Virus record (IMG/VR): IMGVR_UViG_3300020202_000001
Coordinates: 62,001-126,000 of that record
DNA: 64,000 bases
Strand: one strand, 5' to 3'
Shown: positions 23,260 to 57,890 of the stretch, one piece after another
Layout of the letters: each line of letters opens with the position of its first letter
How positions within the stretch are numbered: position 1 is the stretch's first letter
Made by a program: the position numbers and the translations under genes
Notes under the pieces: generated by a model
Database searches by the model: none
Told to the model about the DNA's origin: nothing
What the model saw: only the letters and a program-made list of their open reading frames with translations

Positions 23260-24696
23260 ATGGCCAAGCCAGGCTTCTACAACGACAACCGCAACCGGGC
23301 CTTCCCGTTCGTGAAGGGCACGGTCGGGGACCTGTTGGCCGCCGCGGACACGGTTGCCGCCCTGCCGGCCGCCACGGTCGTCGACGCCGGGTTCGTCCTC
23401 GGCCTGCGGTCCGGGTTCATCGACGGCGTCCACAAGATCCGGCTGGAGAAGGTCCGCCGCGTCGGCGACGACGTGTACTTCGACTTCGCCTCCGACGCGC
23501 CGGCGCTGGTCGGCAAGCCGCTCACGTTCCACCGGTCGGCCGCGTCGGCCGAGGAGTACGAGACCGAGCACGTCGAGGTGCTGGACGAGGGGTACGTGAT
23601 CGTCAGCGCGGTGTCCCAGTCGGTCAGCGAGGGCGACCCGACGCCGGTCAACTGCGGGTGCATCCAGCTCGGCAAGAGCGGCAGCTTCGTCCCGAGCTGC
23701 ACGGGCACGATGCGGCTGTTCCTGAACGACGACAACTTCGCGGACAACAAGGGGTCGTTCACCGTCACGATCAACGGCGAGACGTTCGTCGTCCCGTCGA
23801 CCGAGCCGAACGGCGTGCCCGGCCCCGACGTCATCGCCGGCCAGACGTACGCCTACACGGCCAGCGGGCTCGTGGAGTTCGACGAGCGGCAGGGCGTGAA
23901 GCGGATGTGCGACCCGGACGGGCCGACGAGCGAGTCGATCAAGTACGGCATCCCCGGCGAGCACCCGTGCCCCGGGCTGGTCGAGTGGTCGCTGGTCGGG
24001 AAGCTGACCGGCAGCCCGGTCGTGACCCCGCCGCCGCCCACGACCACGCCGTCCGAGACGTGCGAGGGCGAGCCCCTGTGGGGCGGGTACCTCGTGACCG
24101 GCCGGCTGGCGGACCTCCTGACCGTGCTCCCGGGCGACGGGGAGGTGACCGGGGCGGTCGGGGCGGGCCTGGTCGAGCCCGCGCTGGTCCAGAACGACGC
24201 CAACTCGTACATCGGCAGCGTGAACGTCGGCAACGCGGACCGCACGCGGGTGGACGCTCCCGGCGACTGCCCGCCGTTGACCTGGCCCCACGACACCGGC
24301 GAAGATGTGATCTTCGTCAACGCGAGCTGCCTGCGGGGCGACATCCGGTTCAAGCCCGGGTACAACGCGATCGTCCGGCAGGAGTCGGACACGAACCTGC
24401 TGATCTTCGGTGCCGAGGTCGGGGCCGGCGAGGGCCAGCCGTGCGACCAGGTGCCGCTGTTCGACGGGGAGGTGCCGCCGGCCGGGAGCGCCCTGCTGGA
24501 GGGCGGCCCCCGGTGCAACGAGGTGATCCGCTCGATCAACGGCGTGGGCGGCAAGTTCGCCGCGCTGCTGGGCGGGACGGGCGTCACCGTGACGCAGCTG
24601 CCGGCGTCGAACAAGGTCGTCGTCGACGTGAACATGGGCGGGCTTGCGGCGTGCTTCGCGTCGAGCGAGTTCTCGGAAGTGTCGGAAACGCTGTAG
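23260..24696 (+). CDS. Virion protein, paralogue 5, with a lectin-like insert
   Basis: [13 protein letters not shown]-terminus; [20 protein letters not shown]; [14 protein letters not shown]. Confidence 0.65.
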
Positions 24697-24745
24697 TACC
24701 ACCGGCGGCCAAGGACGGCCGTCGCACCAGACACGGAGGTCTGTC

Positions 24746-27700
24746 ATGCCGGTCCCCTGCACGGGCTCCACGCCCGGCGTCTTCACGCCGAGCGGCACGG
24801 TCCACACGATCGAGACCGACATCACGAAGGGCACCCCCGTGTACTTCGCCGGGGGCATGTCGTTCCCCGCCGGCCGGTACCGGATCAAGTACCTCCGCGG
24901 CTGCCTGAAGTTCCGCCACGACTTCGACTGGGGCGTCGACACGACGTTCAAGGTCAGCGTCGACCCCGGCAGCGGGGCCACGGACATCGGCCAGGCCCCG
25001 GGCGTCGAGAACCGGCTGCCGAAGGTGAACCACCAGGGCGACGGGTCCAACCCGAACGCCAAGATCCGCGGCAAGGGCTGGCCGACGAAGGGCGAGGCCG
25101 AGGCGGCCAACCAGAACGCCCCGCCGTTCGAGTTCAACCACGGCGGCGGCAAGATCGGCGTGCGGCTGGCCGACAGCCCGTACTCGGACAACATCAGCGG
25201 CAAGCCGAGCCCGAAGTACACGCTCCAGCTCCTGGAGCCGTGCACGGTCCCGATCCCGCCCGGCGTCCCGCCCGAGACGCCCGAGGTCACGATCGTCACC
25301 TACCCGCCCACGCCGGAGGCGTTCCCCCGCGCCCGCGTGAAGTGCGGCGTGCCCGAGGTGCCGGGCATCCCCCAGCTGCCGATCATCAACGTCTGCATCG
25401 TGCCGCCCGCCCCGCAGCCGATCCTGGCGTGCCCGGAGCCGGTGGTGAACATCCCGCCGCCCGAGCAGGCGATCCCGTGCCCGCAGATCCAGGTCGGGGC
25501 GTCGTTCGAGGTGAAGGTCGGGCCGCCGTCCGTCACGCTGACCACGACCTCGACCAACACGACCGACGCGTGCGGCGACGCGACGTGCGGCACGCAGATG
25601 CACTTCGCGTTCCAGCTGCCGCCGACGCCGCAGATCCCCTGCCCGCAGATCACCGTGCAGTCCCAGACGACGGTGACGCCGGGCAACCCCGACGCCACGG
25701 TCACGGTGGAGACGCTCCCGGGCGGCCCGCCGGACCCGTGCCGGTTCAAGTTCAACTTCGCGTTCCAGCTCCCCCCGCCGCCGCCGTGCCCGCAGATCGA
25801 GGCGGAGTACACGTCGACGACGACCGAGGGCGACCCGTCCGCGAGCGTGACGGTCACGAAGACCGCGGACGACCCGTGCCGCTACCTGTTCAACTTCGCG
25901 TTCCAGATGCCGCCCGCCCCGCAGTGCCCGGAGATCGAGGCCGAGGCCACGACCACGGTCACCGAGGGCAGCCCGTCCGCGAGCGTCGAGGTCACGAAGG
26001 AGAGCGATGACCCGTGTAAGTACAAGTTCGCGTTCGCGTTCCAACTTCCACCGGCCCCTCAAGTTCCCTGCCCGCAAATCGAGGCTACATCTACCACGAC
26101 GGTCACCGAGGGCAGCCCCTCCGCCAGCGTCGAGGTGACCAAGGAGTCGGACAACCCGTGCTCCTACAAGTTCTCGTTCGCGTTCCAGCTTCCGCCCGCC
26201 CCGCAGGCACCGCAGTGCCCGACGATCACGGGCAGCGCGTCGGCGACCAGCACCGAGGGCGAGGCCAGCGCCAGCCTCGACGTGCAGAAGACGGGCGACG
26301 ACCCCTGCGCGTACAGCTTCACGTTCGCGTTCCAGGTCCCCAAGGGGCCGCAGGGGCCGTACGGCCCGACCGGGCCGTGCCCCCAGGTGACGGCGTCGGC
26401 GTCGGCGACCACCACGGAGGGCGACGCAGCCAGCGCCTCCGTCGAGGTCAGCGAGCAGTCCGGCTGCCACAAGGTGTTCACGTTCGCGTTCCAGCTCCCC
26501 AAGGGGCCGCAGGGTCCGCAGGGGCCGACCGGCCCGCAGGGGCCGCGCGGGTACCAGGGTCCGCAGGGTCCGACCGGCCCGCAGGGCAGCACCGGGCCGC
26601 AGGGGCCGACCGGCCCGCAAGGCATGACGGGGGCACAGGGTCCTCAGGGGCGTACCGGCCCGCAGGGTCCGACCGGCCCGCAGGGGGCGGACGGCGTCTG
26701 CCCGCAGTGCCCGCCCGGCGCTCAGGGTCCGACCGGGCCACAGGGTCCGACCGGCCCGATGGGTGCTCAGGGTGCCGTGGGCGCTCAAGGTGCCCCCGGC
26801 CCGCAGGGTGCCACGGGGGCGACCGGGGCGACCGGCCCGCAAGGCCCGACCGGGCCGACCGGCGCGACCGGTGCGACCGGCGACACGCCCGACGTCGGCT
26901 TCGCAACCACCGCCAACGCACTGCCGCACGGCTCGCCGCCGACCGCAGACGTCATCCCGTTCAGCGGCGGGCCGCAGAACCCGGTCTTCCTCATCACGTT
27001 CGGCATCCCCGAAGGTGCCCAAGGCGCGACCGGCCCCCAAGGCCCGACCGGCCCGCAAGGCACGACCGGGGCGACAGGGGCCACCGGCGACACGGGACCG
27101 CAGGGTCCGACCGGCCCGACCGGTGCGACCGGCGACGTCGGTCCCCAAGGGCCGACCGGCCCGCAAGGAGCTACCGGCGCGACGGGTGCTACGGGCGAAG
27201 TTGGGCCACAGGGTCCGACCGGCGCTACGGGTGCGACCGGTGATGTCGGTCCGCAGGGTCCGACCGGCCCGCAGGGAGCCACTGGCGCGACGGGTGCCAC
27301 GGGCGAGATCGGACCTCAAGGCTCGACGGGTGCCACCGGCCCGCAAGGCCCCACGGGTCCGACCGGCGCGACGGGTGCCACGCCCGAGATGGCCCTGACC
27401 TCGACGGCGAACACGCTGCCGGCCGGGTCGGCGGCGACGGCCACCGTCTCGCAGACGGCCGGCGGGCCGCAGAACCCGACGTTCGAGTTCACCTTCGGCA
27501 TCCCCGAGGGTGCCGCCGGGGCGACGGGCTCCCAAGGTTCCACCGGCCCGCAAGGTCCCACGGGTCCGACCGGCGGCACGGGCGACATGGGTCCGCAGGG
27601 ACCGACCGGTGCCACCGGCGCTCAAGGGGCGACGGGGCCACAGGGTCCGACCGGCCCGCAGGGTGCGACCGGGGCGACGGGTTCGATGGGTCCGCAGGGT

Positions 27701-29158
27701 CCGACCGGGCCGACCGGGCCGACCGGCGCGAACGGTGCTGACGGCGCTGTCGGACCGCAAGGCCCGACCGGCCCGCAAGGAGCGACCGGCGCAACGGGCG
27801 AGACGGGGCCAGCCGGCCCGGCTTCGGTCGGCGAGACCGGCCCGCAAGGCCCGGCAGGCGCGACGGGTGCCACCGGCGCTCAGGGCAGCGTGGGTGCAAC
27901 GGGTCCGCAGGGACCGACCGGTGCCACCGGCTCGACGGGCTCGCAAGGGCCGATCGGGCCGACCGGGTTCCAGGGCGGCACCGGCGCTTCCGGCCCGCAA
28001 GGCCCCACCGGTGCCACCGGTGCCACGGGTGCCCAAGGCCAGAACGGCTCGACCGGGCCGCAGGGTCCGACCGGAGCAACGGGCGCGACCGGGCTCCAGG
28101 GTCCGACCGGCCCGAGCGGGCAACAGGGCTCGCAGGGTTACCAGGGTCCGACCGGTCCGGTCGGCCCGCAGGGCAGCACGGGTGCCACCGGCGCGACCGG
28201 TGCCCAAGGCCAGAACGGCTCGACAGGTCCGCAAGGCCCCACCGGCCCGAGCGGCCAGCAGGGATCGCAAGGCGTCCAAGGTCCGGCGGGTCCGACCGGG
28301 CCGCAGGGTGCCACCGGTGCGACCGGCGCGACCGGACCGCAGGGTTCGCCGGGTGCCACCGGCCCACAGGGTCCGACCGGGGCGACCGGCCAGACGGGTC
28401 CCCAAGGCCCGATGGGTCCCACCGGTTACCAGGGCGGCATGGGGGCGACGGGTGCCACCGGCGCGCAGGGTCCGATGGGCTACACCGGAAGCACCGGCGC
28501 TCAGGGTCCGGTGGGGCCGAGCGGTGCTCAGGGTCCGATGGGCTACACCGGCAGCACCGGGGCTCAAGGCCCGATGGGGCCGAGCGGCTACAACGGCAGC
28601 GACGGGCCGCAGGGTCCGATGGGGCCGAGCGGCCAGCAAGGGCCGCAGGGCCAGCAGGGCATGATCGGGCCGCAGGGTCCGACCGGCTCGACCGGCAGCA
28701 ACGGCGCGGACGGCCCGCAGGGGCCGAGCGGTCCGACCGGCCCGCAGGGCGGCAAGACGGCGATCGTCGCGATCGACGGCAAGTACCGCGGCCTGTTCTG
28801 CACGGAAGGCCCGGAGGTCTGGTTCCAGGACTTCGTGGACGTCGAGGTCGAGATCGACGAGTGCGGGTGCGGCACGACGCGGCACCCGATCGACCCGCTG
28901 TTCATCAAGGCGTGCGAGCCGGGCTCGATCCGCGTCGCGTCCCACGCCGTCGACGCGCTCGGGCTGTCGTGCTCGTTCCTCGACGGCGGCGTGATCGTCG
29001 TCGCGGTGAACGAGGCGGTCGGTGCCAAGCGGGCGACGGCCGTCGTCGGCCTGGTCGGCGTCCGCAAGGGCTTCGCCAAGGTCCGGTTCCCCGAGTACAG
29101 CGAGGCCCAGTTCAAGGCGAACACCGCCTTCTACCAGTCGGCGTACACCCATGGCTAA
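24746..29158 (+). CDS. Collagen-like fibre protein (1470 aa)
   Basis: Start ATG 24746 with GGAGG SD; N-terminal globular domain, seven Cys-paired repeats, long Gly-X-Y region, C-terminal [14 protein letters not shown] domain. Confidence 0.85.
25472..26500 (+). repeat. Seven ~45-aa repeats CPxI...EGxxSASVxV...DPCxYxFxFAFQxP
   Basis: Counted directly in the translation. Confidence 0.85.
26504..28750 (+). repeat. Gly-X-Y collagen repeats (GPQ, GPT, GAT dominant), about 215-220 triplets with two ~44-aa interruptions
   Basis: Seen directly in the translation. Confidence 0.95.
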
Positions 29159-47057: not shown

Positions 47058-48209
47058 TTGGCGACGAAGACCATGCCCGAAACCGGGCTCCCCGTGCTGT
47101 ACAGCCGGCGGAGCGACAAGAAGATCCAGACCTGGCGCATCGAGGTCGACCCCGCCGGCCGGTTCCGCGTCCACAGCGGGATCGAGGACGGCAAGACCGT
47201 CACCAGCGAGTGGACCCAGTGCGTCGGGAAGAACCCTGGCAAGAAGAACGCGACGACGCCCCAGCAGCAGGCGGAGCTGGAGGCCCGCGCCCTGTGGAAG
47301 AAGAAGCAGGACGAGGGCTACAAGGTGAACGTCGCCGACGTGGACGTCCAGACGGCCTTCTGGCCGATGCTGGCCGAGCACTACGACGACTTCCCCGAGC
47401 TGGTGAAGGCCGCGTTCGCGGCGGGCGAGACCGTGATGTGCCAGCCGAAGCTGGACGGCATGCGGTGCGTGACCCGCCTCGACGGGATGTGGAGCCGCAA
47501 CGGCAAGCCGGTGCCGTCCGCCCCGCACGTCTACGAGGCCCTGTCCAAGCAGCTCCGGCACTACGCCCAGGTGACGTTCGACGGGGAGCTGTACGCGGAC
47601 AAGTTCGCGGACGACTTCAACAAGATCATCTCGCTGGCGAAGAAGGGCAAGCCGAAGCCGGCCGACCTGGCCGAGTCGGCCGAGCACCTGCAGTACCACG
47701 TCTACGACGCCCACTCGGCGGCCCTGCCCGACCGGCCGTTCTCGAAGCGGCACGCGTTCCTCCGCGACGTGGTCGAGCTGGTGAACCACCCCGCGATCGT
47801 GCTCGTCGAGACGGTCGTCGCCCAGGACATGGAGCACATCGAGACGCTCTTCGGGCAGTGGCGGGCGAAGGGGTACGAGGGGGCGATGATCCGCCTCGAC
47901 CGGCCGTACGAGAACAAGCGGTCCCGGAGCCTGCTGAAGTTCAAGCAGTTCGTCGAGGAGGAGTTCAAGGTCGTCGACGTGATCGAGGGCGTCGGCAACA
48001 AGTCCGGGATGGCGGGCGCGCTGGAGTTCAAGACCGCGGCGGGGCGTAAGTTCACCGCCGCGATCATGGGCAACCGCGCGTTCTTCCGAAAGCTCCTCGC
48101 CGACAAGAAGAACGTGAAGGGCAAGGTCGCCACGGTGCAGTTCCAGAACTACACCCCGGACGGGAGCCCCCGGTTCCCGTGCGTCAAGGCGATCCGCGAC
48201 TACGAGTAG
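47058..48209 (+). CDS. lig: ATP-dependent DNA ligase with an N-terminal WGR-like domain
   Basis: Motif I QPKLDGMR, motif III FDGELY, YHVYDA, motif IV GYEGAMIR, motif V LLKFK, OB-fold TVQFQNYTPDGSPRFP. Confidence 0.9.
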   Translation: MATKTMPETGLPVLYSRRSDKKIQTWRIEVDPAGRFRVHSGIEDGKTVTSEWTQCVGKNPGKKNATTPQQQAELEARALWKKKQDEGYKVNVADVDVQTAFWPMLAEHYDDFPELVKAAFAAGETVMCQPKLDGMRCVTRLDGMWSRNGKPVPSAPHVYEALSKQLRHYAQVTFDGELYADKFADDFNKIISLAKKGKPKPADLAESAEHLQYHVYDAHSAALPDRPFSKRHAFLRDVVELVNHPAIVLVETVVAQDMEHIETLFGQWRAKGYEGAMIRLDRPYENKRSRSLLKFKQFVEEEFKVVDVIEGVGNKSGMAGALEFKTAAGRKFTAAIMGNRAFFRKLLADKKNVKGKVATVQFQNYTPDGSPRFPCVKAIRDYE

Positions 48210-49042: not shown

Positions 49043-49522
49043 ATGGAACTGAACACCGCTATCATCACCTGGTGCGATCGCACGCTGAACCCGCGGCCCG
49101 GCTACTACGCCGGACGCGGACCCAAGCGGGGCGACCTGAACGACAAGCACCTCCAGCAGCTGTGGGCCGGCATCAAGAAGGACTTCGGCGACGAGCAGGC
49201 GGCCGAGTTCGTGAAGATGGTCGCGGACCTGAAGGACATGAGCGCCACGGCGTTCCTCGTGTCCATGGAGCACTTCTGGGCTCACGGCCTGAAGTGGACC
49301 GGCCGCGAGCAGGAGCCGGGCGACGGCAACACGATGTCCGCCCGGGGCGACGATCGGTTCACCGAGGGCATGTGCGTCATCGCCTCCGTCCTCGGCCGGC
49401 AGAACTCGTCGCCCGAGCAAGAGGCGTTCGAGTCCTACAACATCAAGGCCCCGTTCCTGCGACGGCACGGAGTCGAGATCGAGCCGCCAGCCCTCGGCGG
49501 CGAAGTCTTCGGGTACCGATGA
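49043..49522 (+). CDS. Hypothetical protein
   Basis: 159 aa; ATGA coupling to the kinase-like gene. Confidence 0.6.
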   Translation: MELNTAIITWCDRTLNPRPGYYAGRGPKRGDLNDKHLQQLWAGIKKDFGDEQAAEFVKMVADLKDMSATAFLVSMEHFWAHGLKWTGREQEPGDGNTMSARGDDRFTEGMCVIASVLGRQNSSPEQEAFESYNIKAPFLRRHGVEIEPPALGGEVFGYR

Positions 49523-50454
49523 AGAAACCCAGGCCGAAGCGACGCCTCGACATCCCCACGGTCTCCGGCAAGTTCGGGACCGGGGCGACGGTGTGGGGCG
49601 CGAAGCACGAGTACACGGTCGGGAAGCTGGTCGGACAGACCACGACGAGCGACCTGTACCTCGCGACCCCCGGCGTCGGCGACCCCGCCTTCATCAAGAT
49701 CGTCCGCGACCCGGACGACAACGACCTCGCCGAGCGTGAGGTCGAGATCCTGAGCCACGTCTACCCCCGCGTCTGGGCGGAGGGCAAGAAGTACCTGCCC
49801 CAGCTCGTCGAGGTCGTCGACGTGTCGGACGAGGACGGCAAGCGGAAGGCGCTCGTCTTCCCGTACGACCCGCGGTTCTACTCGCTGGCCGAGGTGCTGG
49901 CCGAGTACCCGCAGGGCGTCGAGCCGAAGCACGCGGCGTGGATGATTAACCGGATGCTGGAGGCGATCCACTTCGCCAACTACACGGCCGGCGTCGTCCA
50001 CGGGGCGCTGCTGCCCCACAACTTCCACGTCCACGCCGACACGCACGCCGGGCTGATGACCGAGTGGTCGTTCGCGGCCCGCGACGCGTACGAGGTTCAC
50101 GACGGCTCGGGCACGAACCTGAAGCCGGGCGAGGACGTCGTCGCGGTCGACGACGCGTACCAGGCGTGGTACCCGCCGGAGGTGCTGAAGAAGGAGCCGC
50201 ACAACTTCTCGGTCGACCTGTGGATGATGAGCAAGTGTGCGATCCAGCTGTTGGGCGGTGACCCCCTTTCGGGTAAGCTGCCCGCGTCGGTGCCGAAGCC
50301 GATCGCCGGGTTCCTGCGGTACATCACGCTCCAGCAGGACCCGTCGAAGCGGCCGCAGGAGGCCCTCAAGCTCCACGACGAGTTCGGCGACATCTGCAAG
50401 CAGGTGTTTGGCCCCAAGAAGTTCCACAAGTTCCACATGCCGCCGCGGGCGTAA
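49519..50454 (+). CDS. Hanks-type protein-kinase-fold protein with degenerate catalytic motifs (pseudokinase-like)
   Basis: Start ATG 49519; FIKI..alphaC REVEIL, VHGALLPHN, LMTEWS, WYPPEVL, SVDLWMMSKC. Confidence 0.7.
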   Translation: MKKPRPKRRLDIPTVSGKFGTGATVWGAKHEYTVGKLVGQTTTSDLYLATPGVGDPAFIKIVRDPDDNDLAEREVEILSHVYPRVWAEGKKYLPQLVEVVDVSDEDGKRKALVFPYDPRFYSLAEVLAEYPQGVEPKHAAWMINRMLEAIHFANYTAGVVHGALLPHNFHVHADTHAGLMTEWSFAARDAYEVHDGSGTNLKPGEDVVAVDDAYQAWYPPEVLKKEPHNFSVDLWMMSKCAIQLLGGDPLSGKLPASVPKPIAGFLRYITLQQDPSKRPQEALKLHDEFGDICKQVFGPKKFHKFHMPPRA

Positions 50455-50466
50455 CCGCGGGGCAGT

Positions 50467-50486
50467 TCCAAAAACCGGTTTTGAGA
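50467..50486. promoter_or_regulatory. Dispersed palindrome, copy 8 (TCCAAAAACCGGTTTTGAGA)
   Basis: Intergenic between the kinase-like and vWA genes. Confidence 0.85.
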
Positions 50487-50518
50487 TCCGGTAGTGTCCG
50501 TCAGAAGGAGTCCCACCC

Positions 50519-51493
50519 ATGGGCGGTAGCAACTTTTCCTCCGAAGCGTACGCCACGAAGTCCGTCCTCCGCGCCAGCGCCGGCGTCGCGGGCCGGTCCA
50601 CGATGCACACCAAGGCCGTCAGCGAGGGCAAGGCCCCGGCGCTGCACGACAAGATGAGCCCGATGGGCGTGAAGGTCCGCGAGAGCCGCGACAGCGCCGT
50701 GCACCCGAACAGCACGGGCGTGATCTTCCTGCTCGACGTCACGGGCAGCATGGGCCAGGTGCCCGTGCAGATCCAGAAGCACCTGCCGGTCCTGCCCGAG
50801 ACGCTCGTCAAGGGCGGGCACCTGCCCGACGCCGCGATCATGATGATGGCGGTCGGCGACGCCTACTGCGACACGGTCCCGCTCCAGGTCGGGCAGTTCG
50901 AGTCCGGCAACGAGATGGACGAGGACCTCGACCGCCTCTACATCGAGGGCGGCGGGAGCCCCGGCCACATGGGCGGCCACGAGAGCTACGAGCTGGGCAT
51001 GTACTTCGCCGCCCGGCACACCGCGATGGACTGCCTGGAGAAGCGGAACCGCAAGGGCTACCTCTTCATCGCGTGCGACGAGATGCCGTACGACGTCGTC
51101 AAGCGCGACCAGGTCAAGCGGATCATGGGGCCGACCGCCGAGATCGAGGCGGACATCCCGCTCGACGAGATCGTCGCGGAGCTGAAGAAGAAGTTCCACG
51201 TCTACGTCCTGATCGCGCCGACCGCGTCCGGCCAGCAGCCCGCCGTCCGCCAGCGGTGGCAACAGCTGTTCGGCGAGAACGTCATCATGCTCCCCAGCGC
51301 CGAGCAGACGGCGAAGCTCGTGGCCGACTGCATCGCGGCCAACGAGGAGGCGATCGGCAAGGGCCAGGTCTTCGCGACGGCGGACGACGACGCCGGCGGC
51401 GACGACGCGGACGCCGACGACCACGGCAGCGGTGGCACGGCCACCGCCACCAAGCCCGCCGTGAAGAAGCCCGGCAAGGCCAAGCGGCTGTAA
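50519..51493 (+). CDS. von Willebrand factor A domain protein
   Basis: MIDAS motif FLLDVTGSM, GGGS..HESYE, LFIACDE; acidic then basic C-terminal tail. Confidence 0.8.
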   Translation: MGGSNFSSEAYATKSVLRASAGVAGRSTMHTKAVSEGKAPALHDKMSPMGVKVRESRDSAVHPNSTGVIFLLDVTGSMGQVPVQIQKHLPVLPETLVKGGHLPDAAIMMMAVGDAYCDTVPLQVGQFESGNEMDEDLDRLYIEGGGSPGHMGGHESYELGMYFAARHTAMDCLEKRNRKGYLFIACDEMPYDVVKRDQVKRIMGPTAEIEADIPLDEIVAELKKKFHVYVLIAPTASGQQPAVRQRWQQLFGENVIMLPSAEQTAKLVADCIAANEEAIGKGQVFATADDDAGGDDADADDHGSGGTATATKPAVKKPGKAKRL

Positions 51494-51526
51494 CCGCGAC
51501 CCGCACCGTAACCCCGTAACCACAGG

Positions 51527-51552
51527 AGGCCCCGGCGGAGACGCCGGGGCCT
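51527..51552 (+). terminator. Perfect 11-bp hairpin with GAGA tetraloop just before the AdSS-like start
   Basis: AGGCCCCGGCG-GAGA-CGCCGGGGCCT followed by ACCCTTT-ATG. Confidence 0.55.
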
Positions 51553-51559
51553 ACCCTTT

Positions 51560-53056
51560 ATGCAGCAGACGAAGGTTTACGTCGTTGTCGATCTGGGCTT
51601 CGGTGACGCCGGCAAGGGCACGGTCGTGGACTACCTGGTCCGCACGCGCAAGGCCGGCACCGTGGTCCGATTCAACGGCGGGGCACAGGCGGCCCACAAC
51701 GTGACGCTCCCGGACGGCCGGCGGCACCCGTTCAGCCAGTTCGGCAGCGGGACGTTCGTGCCGGGCGTGAAGACGTACCTCACCGAGGACGTCCTGTTCG
51801 ACCCCAACTCCCTGCTCGGCGAGGAGGCCGCCCTGCAGGCGCTGGGCGTGACCGACGCGTTCGAGCGGTTCGCGGTGCACGAGGAGTGCCTCGTCGTCAC
51901 CCCGTTCCACCGGACGGCCAACCGGCTGCGGGAGGTGGCCCGCGGCGACAAGCCGCACGGGAGCTGCGGGATGGGCATCGGCGAGGCGATGTCCGACGCC
52001 ACCGGCCGCGACAAGGTCGCGATCCGCGTCAAGGACCTACTGCTGCCCGCCGACGAGCTGCGGCGGAAGCTGGAGTGGGTGCGGCAGTACAACGAGGGCA
52101 AGGCGCTCGTCTACTACCCGAAGTACAAGGAGCACCAGCTGGGGCAGGGCCTCGACCCATCGGCCGTCGAGTGGTTCCTCGACCAGTGCCGCCGCGTGGC
52201 GGACCTGGTGACGATCGCCGATGACGCGTACGAGGACAAGCACGTCTTCAACTGCGACAGCGACCAAGTCGTCGTGTGCGAGGGAGCACAGGGCGTCCTG
52301 CTCGACGAGCACTACGGGTTCCACCCCTACACGACGTGGAGCACGGTGACCCCGCACCGGGTGCTGGAGAAGATCCGCGAGGCGAACTACATCACCGGCA
52401 CGGTCGGCGGCGAGGTCGAGCGGGTCGGCGTGACGCGGGCGTACCAGACGCGGCACGGGGCCGGGCCGTTCCCGACGTGGGAGCGGGGCGGCAAGGCGTG
52501 GGAGCACCTCGGTGCCCCCGACGCCAACAAGGAGCACGAGTGGCAGGGCAAGTTCCGCGTGGGCTGGCTCGACACCGTGCTCCTGCGGTACGCGATCGAG
52601 GCGTGCAGCGTGCCGTGGTCGACGCAGACGATCGACTGGCTGGCCGTGACGTGCCTCGACCGGCTGCACGGGGCGTTCCCGCAGGTGCCGGTCTGCACGC
52701 ACTACGTCCAGTACCGGGCGGACGCGAAGAAGGTCAGGCACCTGCCGGTCGCCCGCCGGCCCACGCTCGGCGGGCAGGAGATCCTCACGGAGTTCCTGAT
52801 GGGTGCCCAGCCGAGCCAGTTCCCCCGGTTCGACGTGAGCTACCAGGCGGTCGACTACGACCACCTGCTGCCGTACATCGAGCAGCAGGTGGGCGTCCCG
52901 GTGGGGCTCTCCAGCCGGGGGCCGACGTGGCAGGACAAGCTCGAACACGAGGCGTGGGTCGTGCACGGGATTTACGGCAAGACGAAGGTGAAACATGGGC
53001 CTGAAGAAGTCGGTCGAAATCCTGGCGAAACTCAACTTCAGTTCCGAACGCCTTAG
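51560..53056 (+). CDS. Adenylosuccinate-synthetase-family protein (divergent paralogue)
   Basis: GFGDAGKG, RFNGGAQAAHN, EGAQGVLLD..YGFHPYTTWS, VTRAYQTRHGAGPF, RVGWLD, LAVTCLD. Confidence 0.85.
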   Translation: MQQTKVYVVVDLGFGDAGKGTVVDYLVRTRKAGTVVRFNGGAQAAHNVTLPDGRRHPFSQFGSGTFVPGVKTYLTEDVLFDPNSLLGEEAALQALGVTDAFERFAVHEECLVVTPFHRTANRLREVARGDKPHGSCGMGIGEAMSDATGRDKVAIRVKDLLLPADELRRKLEWVRQYNEGKALVYYPKYKEHQLGQGLDPSAVEWFLDQCRRVADLVTIADDAYEDKHVFNCDSDQVVVCEGAQGVLLDEHYGFHPYTTWSTVTPHRVLEKIREANYITGTVGGEVERVGVTRAYQTRHGAGPFPTWERGGKAWEHLGAPDANKEHEWQGKFRVGWLDTVLLRYAIEACSVPWSTQTIDWLAVTCLDRLHGAFPQVPVCTHYVQYRADAKKVRHLPVARRPTLGGQEILTEFLMGAQPSQFPRFDVSYQAVDYDHLLPYIEQQVGVPVGLSSRGPTWQDKLEHEAWVVHGIYGKTKVKHGPEEVGRNPGETQLQFRTP

Positions 53057-53444
53057 GCGGGCCGTGTGCCACGCCCTGGCGACGGACTACTACAGCGAGG
53101 CCGGCATCGTCGACCGGTTCGAGCTGTACCACATCGCGGTCTGGTACGTCGAGGACAGCCACCAGCCGACCCTCGACGAGTTCGACGAAGAGTTGCAACA
53201 GAAGGCCGCACGCATCGTGCGGCGATTGGTCCCGGAGCTACGACATGGCAAAGGAAACGCGAAACTTTCGGATGCACCCCAAGCTGCTGATGGACGTCAT
53301 CAAGCGGCAGGCCGGCACGCTGTCCAAGGCCATCCTCGAAGGCGTGATGAACGCCGAGGACGCAAGGGCGAAGAAGGTCAGCATCTCGCTGACAGAGGAC
53401 AGCCTCGTGATCGAGGACGACGGCGAAGGGTTCAAAAGCCGTGA
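52995..53444 (+). CDS. Small hypothetical protein (coding-like part ends near 53250; run-on tail overlaps the next gene)
   Basis: GC3-rich codons fill the gap between the AdSS-like and GHKL genes. Confidence 0.5.
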   Translation: MGLKKSVEILAKLNFSSERLRRAVCHALATDYYSEAGIVDRFELYHIAVWYVEDSHQPTLDEFDEELQQKAARIVRRLVPELRHGKGNAKLSDAPQAADGRHQAAGRHAVQGHPRRRDERRGRKGEEGQHLADRGQPRDRGRRRRVQKP

Positions 53445-56348: not shown

Positions 56349-56409
56349 GCCGACCGCAGTGGTCGTCTCCGCGCGGCGACTCAACCGCCTGACGAAGTGG
56401 GACGCATAA
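56113..56409 (+). CDS. Hypothetical protein
   Basis: 98 aa; TAATG coupling to the next gene. Confidence 0.5.
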   Translation: MSDTDPPPGLAALEAERDGYSPWYRELDWPAKRQVQSIQWDLIQAGWATLTFPYRNAMACWVEACRRFRTGNATNKPPEPTAVVVSARRLNRLTKWDA

Positions 56410-57890
56410 TGGGCGCTGTCAAGACGAAGGACCTGACCCGCGAGGTGCTGCTCCGGCAGCTGACGAAGATCTCCAAGCTGCGGAAGCGGGACCCGCTCGT
56501 GATCCTGAGCCACGGGCTCGGCGTCGAGACGGCCGCGATCTGGAAGCGGTGGGTCGAGGAGCCCGAGACCCGCCCGTTCAAGAGCTGGGACCGGCTGATC
56601 GTGGTGACCGCCCAGGTCGGCCACGAGCACGCCGAGACCGTGAAGCTGATGGAGGAGCACCAGCTCCCCGAGATGAAGCGGCTGGGCGTGCGGTTCGTCG
56701 AGGTGGCCCGCCGCGGGCACCTGGAGGCGGACGGGATCGTCGTGCTGCAGGACACGCGGGCACCGGAGAAGCTCCACCCCGAGGGGTACTACAAGCTCGG
56801 CGACGAGCTGAAGCACGCCGGCACGGTCCCGCAGTACAGCGGCGAGCACCGCTGCGCGTTGAAGTTCAAAGCCTTCGTCATCGAGACGTGGATGGCGTAC
56901 GAGTTCCGGGGCGACGAGTCCCGGCCGGTCGTCCACGTCTGGGGCTACAACGCCGGGGAGCTGGGCCGCACGGCCAAGAGCGAGAAGTACGTCAGGCAGC
57001 ACAACAAGGACCGCGAGAAGCCGGCCGGCAAGGGGCAGGCCCCGCTCGTCGTGTTCGGGTTCAACAGCGAGGAGCTGGGCCGCGTCGAGCGGTCGCGGAA
57101 GTACGACGGCCCGACCCGCACCGGGCACTACCCGCTGATCGAGTGGGGCTGGGGCCGCCCGGAGTGCCTGGCGTACCTGACCGGGCACTACAAGGTGCTG
57201 TGGATCAAGAGCGCGTGCGGGTTCTGCCCGTTCAACGAGGAGGCGTACAAGGTCACGCAGATCGGCATCGACCGGTTCCGTCGCGACCCCGACGCCACGG
57301 TGGACGGGCTGTTCGTCGAGTTCGTGTCGCTCAGCCTCAACCCCAAGGGCCAGCTCTACCGGGACCGGACGATGGCGTCGGTCGTGGAGGGCGACCCGAA
57401 GCTCGCCCACGTCTGGCGGGCGTTCCAGGCCCGGCTCGACGCCGAGAAGTGGGGCCTGTACCTCGTGCAGCGGATCTTCACGCTCGACCCCCGGCAGACG
57501 CACGTCCGCATGCTGGCGGGCAAGCCGCCCAAGGCCGGCGTCGCGCGGGCGGTGAAGCTGCTGGACGGGAACCTGACCCGGGCGCAGGCGATCGAGGCCC
57601 TCGAACAGTGCGAGATCGAGAGCCTGGCCCACGGGATGCCGGGCGAGGTCGTGACCCGGGAGAAGGGCCTCCACGGCATCGAGTACGTGTACCTGCACAA
57701 GCGGCGGGACTACTACCCGGCCGTCGAGTGCTTCTACGTCGTCTGCCCGGCCGTCGTCGCCGACAAGGTGCGGGGGCCGTGGGAGACGTTCGAGCGGCGG
57801 TTCAAGTCAGCGCTGGCCGCCAAGCGGCCTAAGGCTAAGGTCCTGCCCAAGCTGGTGATCGAGGCCGACGACGACATCTACTTCCGCTGA
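56409..57890 (+). CDS. PP-loop / PAPS-reductase-like protein (DndC-like motif layout)
   Basis: Start ATG 56409; VILSHGLGVETAAI, HRCALKFK, GYNAGE..R, YPLIEWGWGRPEC, IKSACGFCPF. Confidence 0.65.
   Translation: MGAVKTKDLTREVLLRQLTKISKLRKRDPLVILSHGLGVETAAIWKRWVEEPETRPFKSWDRLIVVTAQVGHEHAETVKLMEEHQLPEMKRLGVRFVEVARRGHLEADGIVVLQDTRAPEKLHPEGYYKLGDELKHAGTVPQYSGEHRCALKFKAFVIETWMAYEFRGDESRPVVHVWGYNAGELGRTAKSEKYVRQHNKDREKPAGKGQAPLVVFGFNSEELGRVERSRKYDGPTRTGHYPLIEWGWGRPECLAYLTGHYKVLWIKSACGFCPFNEEAYKVTQIGIDRFRRDPDATVDGLFVEFVSLSLNPKGQLYRDRTMASVVEGDPKLAHVWRAFQARLDAEKWGLYLVQRIFTLDPRQTHVRMLAGKPPKAGVARAVKLLDGNLTRAQAIEALEQCEIESLAHGMPGEVVTREKGLHGIEYVYLHKRRDYYPAVECFYVVCPAVVADKVRGPWETFERRFKSALAAKRPKAKVLPKLVIEADDDIYFR

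Follow-up and report, generated by a model that had tools for sequence, protein, structure and literature searches.

A conserved cassette of a predicted pseudokinase, a predicted vWA-fold protein and an AdSS-like protein in bacteria and large phages, with NAD-related genes beside many copies

Do three adjacent genes of a 224,418-bp phage genome, which encode a kinase-fold protein, a vWA-fold protein and a relative of adenylosuccinate synthetase (AdSS), form a functional unit, and if so what could this unit do? The genes lie in the window, the 64,000-nucleotide stretch of this genome that was analysed, and are here called K, V and A. An earlier note, made from the sequence alone, described them as co-oriented, separated only by a palindrome copy and a hairpin, and with altered active sites in both enzyme-fold proteins. 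GC3 frame plot and ORF listing gave three genes matching exactly the span given in the note, and its observation is confirmed. The features are listed in the table.

Features of the K-V-A locus, with positions counted from the first nucleotide of the window.
Feature	Position	Strand	Length	Description
K	49519..50454	+	311 aa	Kinase-fold protein, predicted pseudokinase; start ATG overlaps the stop of the upstream 159-aa gene (ATGA); lacks the N-terminal J-domain of most homologues
Repeated element	50460..50494			Near-palindromic intergenic element directly upstream of V, in the 64-nt gap between K and V; core AAAACCGGTTTT at 50471-50482; probably a phage regulatory site
V	50519..51493	+	324 aa	vWA-fold protein (predicted); MIDAS-type D73-x-T75-G-S77 motif; conserved Met-Gly N-terminus; disordered tail (286-324) ending in Arg-Leu; AGGAG ribosome-binding site 8 nt upstream
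Hairpin	51525..51555	+		G+C-rich, in the 66-nt gap between V and A; ends 4 nt before the start codon of A; no U-tract
A	51560..53056	+	498 aa	Divergent AdSS-fold protein; GTP-site and catalytic residues retained, IMP-phosphate and aspartate pockets rebuilt

The core of the intergenic element has nine copies with at most one mismatch in the window, against zero expected, and is part of a ~24-nt element with the alignment consensus GATCCAAAAACCGGTTTTGAGATC; most copies lie 5-40 nt before a start codon. The hairpin folds at -31.9 kcal/mol with a z-score of -3.85, and none of 200 shuffles folds as well. It was not called by a terminator scan and is not a typical terminator, but could affect translation or RNA stability of A.

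The first question is whether the three genes belong together, and their linkage in other genomes had been named beforehand as a test. A lies directly downstream of V in 70/73 bacterial and 66/76 viral loci, and K lies upstream of V in 67/76 and 51/79, respectively; in some phages the order is V-A-K or V-A only. The triad recurs as a unit in 62/70 evaluable genome loci and in 5/5 contexts looked up individually, which have unrelated flanks, and the flanking genes of the window are not conserved neighbours elsewhere. The linkage is far beyond chance and is conserved across phyla and phages. The cassette occurs in about 200 cluster C mycobacteriophages (Bxz1 gp247-250), in Rhizobium and Vibrio phages, in many jumbo phages and in at least 586 bacterial species genomes. 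No description of it was found in the literature searched.

K has a predicted kinase fold (AF2 pLDDT 90), with AAK1, Aurora A and PknB as best PDB matches in Foldseek at about 1e-11. Pfam Pkinase scores 23.2 bits, below the gathering score of 31.7, while a homologue scores 38.2, and phrog_3043 "kinase" scores 79 bits. In the window protein the HRD Asp is replaced by Ala. Among 119 homologues the VAIK Lys is kept in 114 and the alpha-C Glu in 115, whereas the HRD Asp position is Ala in 112 and never Asp, the catalytic-loop Asn position is His in 113, and DFG is replaced by D (97) or G (17) followed by W-C/S, with E-W-S in the window protein. K is for these reasons a predicted pseudokinase. A J-motif (..HPD) is present in 50/72 bacterial and 31-38/57 viral K proteins, although the DnaJ Pfam model scores 23.8 bits on a viral K, below its gathering score of 27.8.

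V has a predicted vWA fold (AF2 pLDDT 83, pTM 0.81), and Foldseek gives a probability of 1.00 to integrin beta-I/alpha-I domains, SpaC vWFA and TFIIH p44. The nearest named clusters in the Atlas are VWA, but no Pfam VWA model matches; phrog_2971, of unknown function, scores 175 bits. A word search found 2729 homologues. The motif in the table, a DxTxS variant of the DxSxS motif of MIDAS sites, and D187 are invariant in 63 aligned sequences. The C-terminus is ...RL in most loci.

A matches PF00709 with 216 bits over residues 8-457, and the PDB search gave PurA chains down to 1e-37 (E. coli PurA 1e-36). By sequence it is nevertheless neither PurA nor PurZ. The NCBIfam purA equivalogs NF002223 and TIGR00184 score 185.9 against a cut-off of 402 and 172.1 against 395.55, and the PurZ model NF038379 scores 57.7 against 300. 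In 120 homologues (E. coli numbering) the GTP-site and catalytic residues are kept, as in the window protein: D13, K16, H41 and Q224 in 120 and D333 in 118. T239 is also kept, in 120, and S414 in 119. In contrast, N38Q is found in 120, I126H in 120, T129C in 117, P135E in 119, S240W in 118, V273H in 119, T301W in 119, G302Q in 120 and R305F in 106, while R143 and R303 are not conserved. In PurA, Val273, Thr300/301, Arg303 and Arg305 are L-aspartate ligands and Asn38, Thr129 and Arg143 are IMP 5'-phosphate ligands. Canonical PurA from Kitasatospora and Oscillochloris, as well as phiVC8 PurZ, keep N38, T129, R143, V273, T301 and R305.

These data bear on two simple readings. The first is that A is an ordinary auxiliary metabolic gene, a working adenylosuccinate synthetase which boosts AMP supply during infection, perhaps insensitive to host feedback, with V and K as unrelated neighbours. 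The database annotation as adenylosuccinate synthase or PurA-like, the full AdSS fold and the retained catalytic residues would favour it. It is however improbable, given the family-wide replacement of aspartate and IMP-phosphate ligands, a score less than half the equivalog cut-off and the absence of any match to Lyase_1 (PurB) in the complete phage genome. In addition, 5/5 bacterial genomes examined hold a canonical PurA (566-612 bits) elsewhere besides the cassette copy (171-210 bits), and the tight V-A linkage would go unexplained. The second reading, a PurZ-type enzyme for 2-aminoadenine (Z) DNA, rests on PHROG 1211, which carries the PurZ label and matches at 258 bits. It is very unlikely, and refuted as far as sequence can show: Asp13 is kept in the window protein and in 120/120 homologues, whereas all 147 phage PurZ sequences have Ser (PMC12884076), as phiVC8 PurZ does in our alignment; PDB PurZ chains match at 6e-7 or worse; no match to HD (DatZ) or MazG (MazZ) is found in the complete genome; and the aspartate pocket needed by PurZ is lost.

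New in this analysis are the genes found around the cassette. A NUDIX+NrtR_WHD gene lies directly upstream of K in 53/80 bacterial loci, and 26 of those keep an intact Nudix box. Some A proteins are fused to a NudC-like Nudix domain; in Kitasatospora the fusion is to a Zn-ribbon+Nudix domain. The phage loci L129, L115/L118 and L122 (labels of viral loci in the compared set) place NrtR, NAMPT and (NadM-)Nudix beside or between V and A, and Rhizobium phage RHph_TM2_3B has a NadM/Nudix gene 2.7 kb upstream of V. The link is however absent from the window and from most phage copies, with NrtR in 4/80 and NAMPT in 5/80 viral loci. The window phage has no NrtR_WHD, NAPRTase or NAMPT match and its only Nudix gene lies 35 kb away; Bxz1 also lacks NAMPT. 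The 53 NrtR-bearing loci are mostly related Actinomycetota and are not independent, and NrtR-family proteins can also sense non-NAD ligands, for example arabinose in the case of AraR (PMC4666351). NAMPT is present in 11/50 V-A-bearing viral records, against about 1.1% of phages with NARP2 (bioRxiv 10.1101/2024.02.11.579819), but this comparison of 22% with 1.1% is loose, since jumbo phages carry NAD genes more often than phages in general.

The explanation we prefer, with moderate confidence, is that the three genes are one copy of a conserved, mobile cassette with the pair V and A as its core, K (usually with an N-terminal J-domain) as the usual third gene and the NrtR-type Nudix/winged-helix protein as a frequent fourth gene in bacteria. 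A is predicted to be a GTP-dependent ligase using AdSS chemistry, in which a carbonyl oxygen of a 6-oxopurine-type nucleotide would be phosphorylated and the phosphate then displaced by an amine. As both pockets differ from PurA and PurZ, the acceptor is probably not plain IMP and the amine would not be L-aspartate, and in this view A would not make adenylosuccinate for AMP or Z-base synthesis. The substrates are guesses from residue changes, without any biochemical datum, and the retained Asp13, His41 and Gln224 would also fit a still IMP-like acceptor. V and K would be non-enzymatic partners: MIDAS would bind a carboxylate ligand, K would bind a nucleotide without transferring phosphate, and the J-domain, where present, would recruit DnaK, so that together they would gate or target A. 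From the recurrent neighbours we infer that the module is switched by, or acts on, NAD-derived nucleotides; in phages it would then hold or reshape the adenine-nucleotide/NAD pool during infection, plausibly against NAD-depleting host immunity. While gene structure, folds (as predicted from models), residue patterns, linkage and paralogy were demonstrated by the analysis, the chemistry of A, including what it does or does not synthesise, the roles of the partners and NAD as the functional context are inferences.

The interpretation given in the earlier note is partly supported. It had proposed that similar triads exist in bacterial genomes, that both active sites are altered, that A does not serve purine salvage and that it may ligate a nucleotide to a non-aspartate amine. 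These four points are supported, the active-site changes being family-wide and A being also distinct from PurZ by sequence, while a non-aspartate amine is the natural reading of the rebuilt aspartate pocket. Two further proposals are not shown: there is no evidence that the amine sits on a protein presented by the vWA domain, and the nucleotide-binding switch suggested for the kinase fold remains an inference from the retained Lys/Glu and the lost Asp. The note missed the J-domain of most K homologues, the NrtR/Nudix gene and the links to NAMPT and NadM, which together point to NAD or ADP-ribose metabolism as the context.

A sharper form of the protein-directed idea is that A attaches a purine nucleotide through C6 to an amine on V itself, the best candidate being the alpha-amine of the conserved N-terminal Gly exposed after Met removal, with K and DnaK presenting the substrate. 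Met-Gly is the N-terminus of V in 156/160 loci and the first possible start codon in 110 of them, the residues binding the aspartate carboxylates are replaced by Trp, Gln, Phe and His, which fits a non-acidic amine, and V and A are the inseparable core. This reading is possible but unlikely: the one complex prediction of V with A gave no verdict, the Nudix fusions of A and the NAD-salvage neighbours point to small-molecule dinucleotide substrates, and in Bxz1 the annotated V start lies 12 codons upstream of the Met-Gly.

The note had also considered a signalling or counter-defence module. A conflict system of the TerY-P type, with V and K as sensor/switch and A as effector, which once triggered drains GTP and IMP or makes a toxic or signalling N6-modified nucleotide, would act in bacteria as defence or abortive infection and in phages in superinfection exclusion or host takeover. 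The vWA plus kinase-fold pairing matches TerY-P as reportedly described by Gao et al. 2020, K has weak PADLOC/NCBIfam matches to the defence kinases PglW, mad6 and PD-T4-6, and the mobile cassette, with its unrelated flanks, lies next to AbiE or PIN genes in two contexts. Against this, V and A have no PADLOC hit, no PP2C gene is present in the cassette, the kinase is predicted to be dead, most contexts are ordinary metabolic neighbourhoods rather than defence islands, and about 200 lytic mycobacteriophages keep the cassette. We regard this alternative as equally doubtful.

Among known systems, adenylosuccinate synthetase (PurA, EC 6.3.4.4) shares with A the fold over the whole length, the P-loop Asp13/Lys16, His41, Gln224 and the guanine-specific Asp333/Ser414, so that GTP-driven carbonyl-O phosphorylation is expected. 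A differs by a residue set of its own in the aspartate and IMP 5'-phosphate/ribose pockets (Q38, H126, C129, E135, W240, H273, W-Q at 300-302, F305), by being a second copy beside the housekeeping purA and by its pairing with a vWA gene. PurZ/PurZ0, the 2-aminoadenylosuccinate synthetase of Z-genome phages, is likewise a phage-borne AdSS-family paralogue with an altered acceptor site, but has Ser at position 13, keeps the aspartate ligands and travels with DatZ/MazZ or DutZ/DmtZ and DpoZ (PMC12884076). The TerY-P triad (vWA TerY, active Ser/Thr kinase and PP2C phosphatase) is also a three-gene unit built on a vWA protein with a MIDAS-type motif next to a kinase-fold protein and is present in bacteria as a mobile cassette; in the present cassette the third gene encodes an AdSS-fold protein, a predicted ligase, rather than a phosphatase, the kinase lacks its catalytic Asp and often carries a J-domain, and no PADLOC TerY-P model matches V or K at E<0.01. 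Compared with NrtR-regulated NAD salvage operons and phage NARP2 (NAMPT plus NMNAT/Nudix), K, V and A are not part of any described NAD pathway (PMC2330246; bioRxiv 10.1101/2024.02.11.579819; PMC13464706), and the window phage and Bxz1 carry the cassette without NAMPT or NrtR; what is shared is the position of the cassette behind an NrtR-type gene in many bacterial loci and its interleaving with NrtR, NAMPT and NadM-Nudix in at least four jumbo-phage loci.

The window covers bases 62001-126000 of the virus record that holds the cassette. This record is 224,418 bp long, has direct terminal repeats, is rated 100% complete by CheckV and is about 69% G+C, with all confidently called genes on the + strand. 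Few of the large proteins match PHROGs, the exceptions being a baseplate wedge protein and an ATPase, and the record looks like a novel jumbo myovirus-like phage of unknown host. A megablast search of the region against the phage collection gave no match, and only protein-level relatives exist. The GC3 frame plot and the ORF lists give three genes, here named K, V and A. The earlier note described three adjacent co-oriented genes separated only by a palindrome copy and a hairpin, with altered active sites in both enzymes, and this description is correct.

Coordinates of the cassette genes and of the other features (window positions unless a locus is named)
Feature	Position	Strand	Description
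K	49519-50454	+	kinase-fold protein, predicted pseudokinase
V	50519-51493	+	vWA-fold protein
A	51560-53056	+	divergent AdSS paralogue
Near-palindromic element, nine copies	1257, 7632, 15976, 23242, 30362, 35624, 45443, 50471, 60842		about 24 nt, consensus GATCCAAAAACCGGTTTTGAGATC
Collagen-repeat ORF	24644-29158	+	1504 aa, probably tail-fibre-like
DNA ligase	47058-48209		ATP-dependent, upstream of the cassette
Stretch between A and the next gene	53057-53244		190 nt, GC3 signal in a third frame
Stem-loop	53205-53223		within the preceding stretch
GHKL gene	53245/53272-54948	+	558 aa, directly downstream of A
PP-loop gene	56409-57890		PAPS-reductase-like protein, downstream of the cassette
Nudix-containing gene	G000:C1:149749-151278 on the phage genome (L170:718-2247)		509 aa, 35 kb downstream of the cassette
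PNPOx-like gene	L018:8528-8953 (a Nocardiopsis locus)		pyridoxamine-phosphate-oxidase fold
K-less phage protein	L131:5576-6001 (a viral locus)		about 120 aa, immediately upstream of V

The start of K overlaps the stop of an upstream 159-aa gene which has no family match. The gap between K and V carries one copy of the near-palindromic element, whose core AAAACCGGTTTT occurs 9 times in the window against 0 expected. Most copies lie 5-40 nt upstream of start codons and the element is probably a phage-specific promoter or operator; as one copy precedes V, V-A may be controlled separately from K. The gap between V and A carries a strong hairpin (-31.9 kcal/mol, z -3.85) that ends 4 nt before the ATG of A, has no U-tract and is not called by the terminator scan. 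The stretch which follows A may hold a small unannotated gene. The next gene encodes a protein with an N-terminal GHKL (HATPase_c_3, sacsin/MORC-like) ATP-binding region and weak matches to restriction-enzyme models, and it does not recur beside the cassette elsewhere. The giant ORF at some distance upstream, which the GC3-based gene caller missed, has 13 matched stretches of the collagen triple-helix repeat (Pfam Collagen, 296 bits).

K is predicted with high confidence (pLDDT 90) to fold as a eukaryotic-like protein kinase, its best PDB matches being AAK1, Aurora A and PknB. In an alignment of 119 family members the ATP-anchoring Lys is kept in 114 and the alpha-C Glu in 115, while the catalytic Asp of HRD is Ala in 112 and never Asp, the catalytic-loop Asn is His in 113 and DFG is replaced by D/G-W-C/S. 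This is a family-wide pseudokinase signature and not decay in one copy. Most homologues carry an N-terminal J-domain motif (Y-R-x-L-...-H-P-D), which is present in 50/72 bacterial and 31-38/57 viral K proteins, although on one viral member Pfam DnaJ scores 23.8 bits, below its 27.8-bit gathering score. The K of the window is the short form without this motif, and as a search of the whole phage found no J-domain or Hsp70 match, DnaK recruitment cannot be argued for this particular copy.

V has no Pfam hit, but is predicted to fold as a vWA/integrin I-domain (AF2 pLDDT 83), with Foldseek giving a probability of 1.00 to integrin I-domains, SpaC vWFA and TFIIH p44. The MIDAS-type D73-x-T75-G-S77 motif and D187 are invariant in 63 sequences. 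Two unusual features are conserved: a Met-Gly N-terminus, present in 156/160 loci and the first possible start codon in 110 of them, and a disordered tail which ends in Arg-Leu in most copies. That the amine used by A is the N-terminal glycine of V cannot be excluded. The one complex prediction, of A (residues 1-465) with V, returned no answer with an ipSAE of 0.00, which counts neither for nor against binding.

A is a full-length AdSS-fold protein (PF00709, 216 bits), which scores less than half the NCBIfam purA cut-offs and about a fifth of the PurZ cut-off. To examine its active site we aligned A to E. coli PurA together with 120 homologues, and also with canonical PurA of two cassette-bearing bacteria and with phiVC8 PurZ; rows taken as the longest ORF from three high-G+C genomes (Nocardiopsis, Gemmataceae and Actinomadura) were wrong-frame ORFs and were left out. 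The GTP site and the catalytic set, Asp13, Lys16, His41, Gln224, Thr239, Asp333 and Ser414, are kept in 118-120 of 120. The residues that hold the IMP phosphate and ribose in PurA, and those that hold L-aspartate, are replaced by a different and equally invariant set: Asn38 to Gln (120), Ile126 to His (120), Thr129 to Cys (117), Pro135 to Glu (119), Ser240 to Trp (118), Val273 to His (119), Thr301-Gly302 to Trp-Gln (119-120) and Arg305 to Phe (106), while Arg143 and Arg303 are not conserved. The roles of these residues are transferred from E. coli PurA. PurZ, which also uses aspartate, keeps Asn38, Thr129, Arg143, Val273, Thr301 and Arg305, its change being Asp13 to Ser, which holds in 100% of phage PurZ (PMC12884076). 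The natural reading is that the phosphoryl-transfer chemistry is preserved while both substrates differ. That A is after all a feedback-resistant PurA cannot be excluded, but we judge this unlikely; in five of five cassette-bearing bacterial genomes a canonical purA (566-612 bits) is present elsewhere in addition to the cassette copy (171-210 bits).

Protein searches place all three genes at 29-37% identity in about 200 cluster C mycobacteriophages. In Bxz1 they are annotated as gp247 (serine/threonine kinase), gp248 (hypothetical protein), gp249 (small hypothetical protein) and gp250 (PurA-like adenylosuccinate synthetase). In a subset of Bxz1-like phages the V gene matches in two pieces about 0.8 kb apart, or only over residues 1-181, with an HNH endonuclease annotated under the match, and V appears to be interrupted by a homing endonuclease in those phages. 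The V-A pair is also adjacent in Rhizobium and Vibrio phages. A word-index search found 7673 relatives of A and 2729 relatives of V, the latter grouped at 90% identity, many of them on bacterial chromosomes, and five of five contexts looked up show K-V-A with unrelated flanks. Pattern scans seeded with V returned at least 586 confirmed loci in bacterial species genomes and 277 viral contigs, many of the latter of 130-437 kb. The bacterial hosts include cultured Nocardiopsis, Actinomadura, Streptomyces, Kitasatospora, Actinoplanes, Streptosporangium and Oscillochloris trichoides and many Chloroflexota and Planctomycetota MAGs.

Gene order was examined over the 80 best-scoring loci of each collection, a choice biased towards V proteins most like that of the window, and with neighbour calls resting on tblastn thresholds. 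A lies directly downstream of V in 70/73 bacterial and 66/76 viral loci, K directly upstream of V in 67/76 and 51/79, and both hold in 62/70 and 45/75, respectively. The other arrangements in viral loci are V-A-K, V-A only, or V and A separated by inserted genes, one such insert being a GIY-YIG homing endonuclease in viral locus L131. In 14 viral loci (among L126-L168) of phages with only V-A and no K, a conserved protein without any Pfam match sits immediately upstream of V and may stand in for K. The flanking genes of the window do not recur beside the cassette elsewhere, apart from a DNA ligase in three viral loci.

Clustering of the flanking ORFs followed by Pfam searches revealed a fourth partner. 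In 53 of 80 bacterial loci a gene with NUDIX plus NrtR winged-helix domains lies immediately upstream of K on the same strand, often overlapping the start of K, as was confirmed by local HMMs for Nudix, NAMPT and NrtR_WHD; in 26 of these loci the Nudix box is intact. Many of the actinomycete loci are related and are not independent. In one MAG the NrtR-like gene lies just downstream of A, and in Kitasatospora A is fused to a C-terminal zinc-ribbon plus Nudix domain of NudC type. In locus L018 and three other Nocardiopsis loci the PNPOx-like gene overlaps the stop of A, extending the operon to five genes there. In jumbo-phage locus L129 the order is NrtR, V, Nudix, NAMPT, A, K; in phage loci L115 and L118 it is NrtR, NAMPT, V, (Nudix), A, K; and in L122 it is NrtR, NadM-Nudix, NAMPT, two small genes, K, V, A. 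Rhizobium phage RHph_TM2_3B has an annotated NMN adenylyltransferase/Nudix gene 2.7 kb upstream of V. NAMPT is present in 11 of 50 V-A-bearing viral records, about six of these copies lying within about 10 kb of the module, while for comparison NARP2 occurs in about 1.1% of sequenced phages (bioRxiv 10.1101/2024.02.11.579819). NARP3 is PnuC plus NadR and is unrelated. NrtR proteins are ADP-ribose-responsive regulators of NAD metabolism (PMC2330246), though family members can sense other ligands (PMC4666351). The phage of the window has none of these genes next to the cassette: it has no NrtR_WHD and no NAPRTase, and its only Nudix domain is the distant one listed in the table, inside a protein with long unmatched N- and C-terminal parts. 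Bxz1 lacks NAMPT.

From these data it is secure that this is a real, ancient and mobile cassette, whose enzyme is, by its sequence, neither PurA nor PurZ and whose other two members are a vWA protein with a MIDAS-type motif and a predicted pseudokinase. It is likely, though inferred from sequence alone, that A is an active GTP-dependent ligase for a different acceptor and amine pair and that V, with K, is its obligate partner. It is plausible but unproven that the module is tied to NAD or ADP-ribose status and that in phages it helps against NAD-directed immunity. The interpretation offered in the earlier note, a nucleotide ligated to a non-aspartate amine, possibly on a protein presented by the vWA domain, is partly supported. 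A more far-reaching and doubtful possibility, not excluded by the evidence, is that the cassette encodes an undescribed nucleotide-modifying step in NAD/adenylate metabolism. In this view the AdSS-fold enzyme would use GTP to aminate a hypoxanthine-type, NAD-derived nucleotide with a non-aspartate amine, the acceptor being for example deamino-NAD, IDP-ribose, or the IMP released by the fused NudC-like Nudix, and the product would be an N6-substituted adenine nucleotide that repairs, marks or signals NAD breakdown. A MIDAS/pseudokinase/J-domain (DnaK-recruiting) pair would gate the enzyme, an ADP-ribose-sensing NrtR would switch it on, and phages would have captured the module to counter NAD-depleting immunity.

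A TerY-P-like conflict system cannot be excluded either; PADLOC gave no hit for V or A, and the eLife 2020 survey of vWA conflict systems does not mention adenylosuccinate or PurA. Full-text literature searches on PurA-like and adenylosuccinate synthetase-like proteins, in connection with phages, kinases, von Willebrand domains, NrtR and NAD-related anti-defence, found no description of the cassette. The nrtX-nrtY genes of the NrtR paper also occur in Proteus and Hahella and form a two-gene unit, and for this reason were not equated with it. Databases call A adenylosuccinate synthase, K serine/threonine kinase and V hypothetical.

The family is large, and it is present in tractable organisms, including Bxz1-type phages of Mycobacterium smegmatis, Rhizobium and Vibrio phages, Streptomyces, Nocardiopsis and Oscillochloris, so that the question is directly testable. 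The cassette also offers a conserved bacterial pseudokinase with a J-domain and a vWA partner, a rare case where the partners of such non-enzymatic modules are fixed by gene order, and if the NAD link holds it adds a component to the phage-host contest over NAD. AdSS-family enzymes are known for only two reactions, those of PurA and of PurZ, the latter having led to the discovery of Z-genomes. Compared with these, A represents a new, third subfamily with both substrate pockets rebuilt, which would imply a new nucleotide product, embedded in a gene set that has not been described, and there is a real chance that its chemistry is new.
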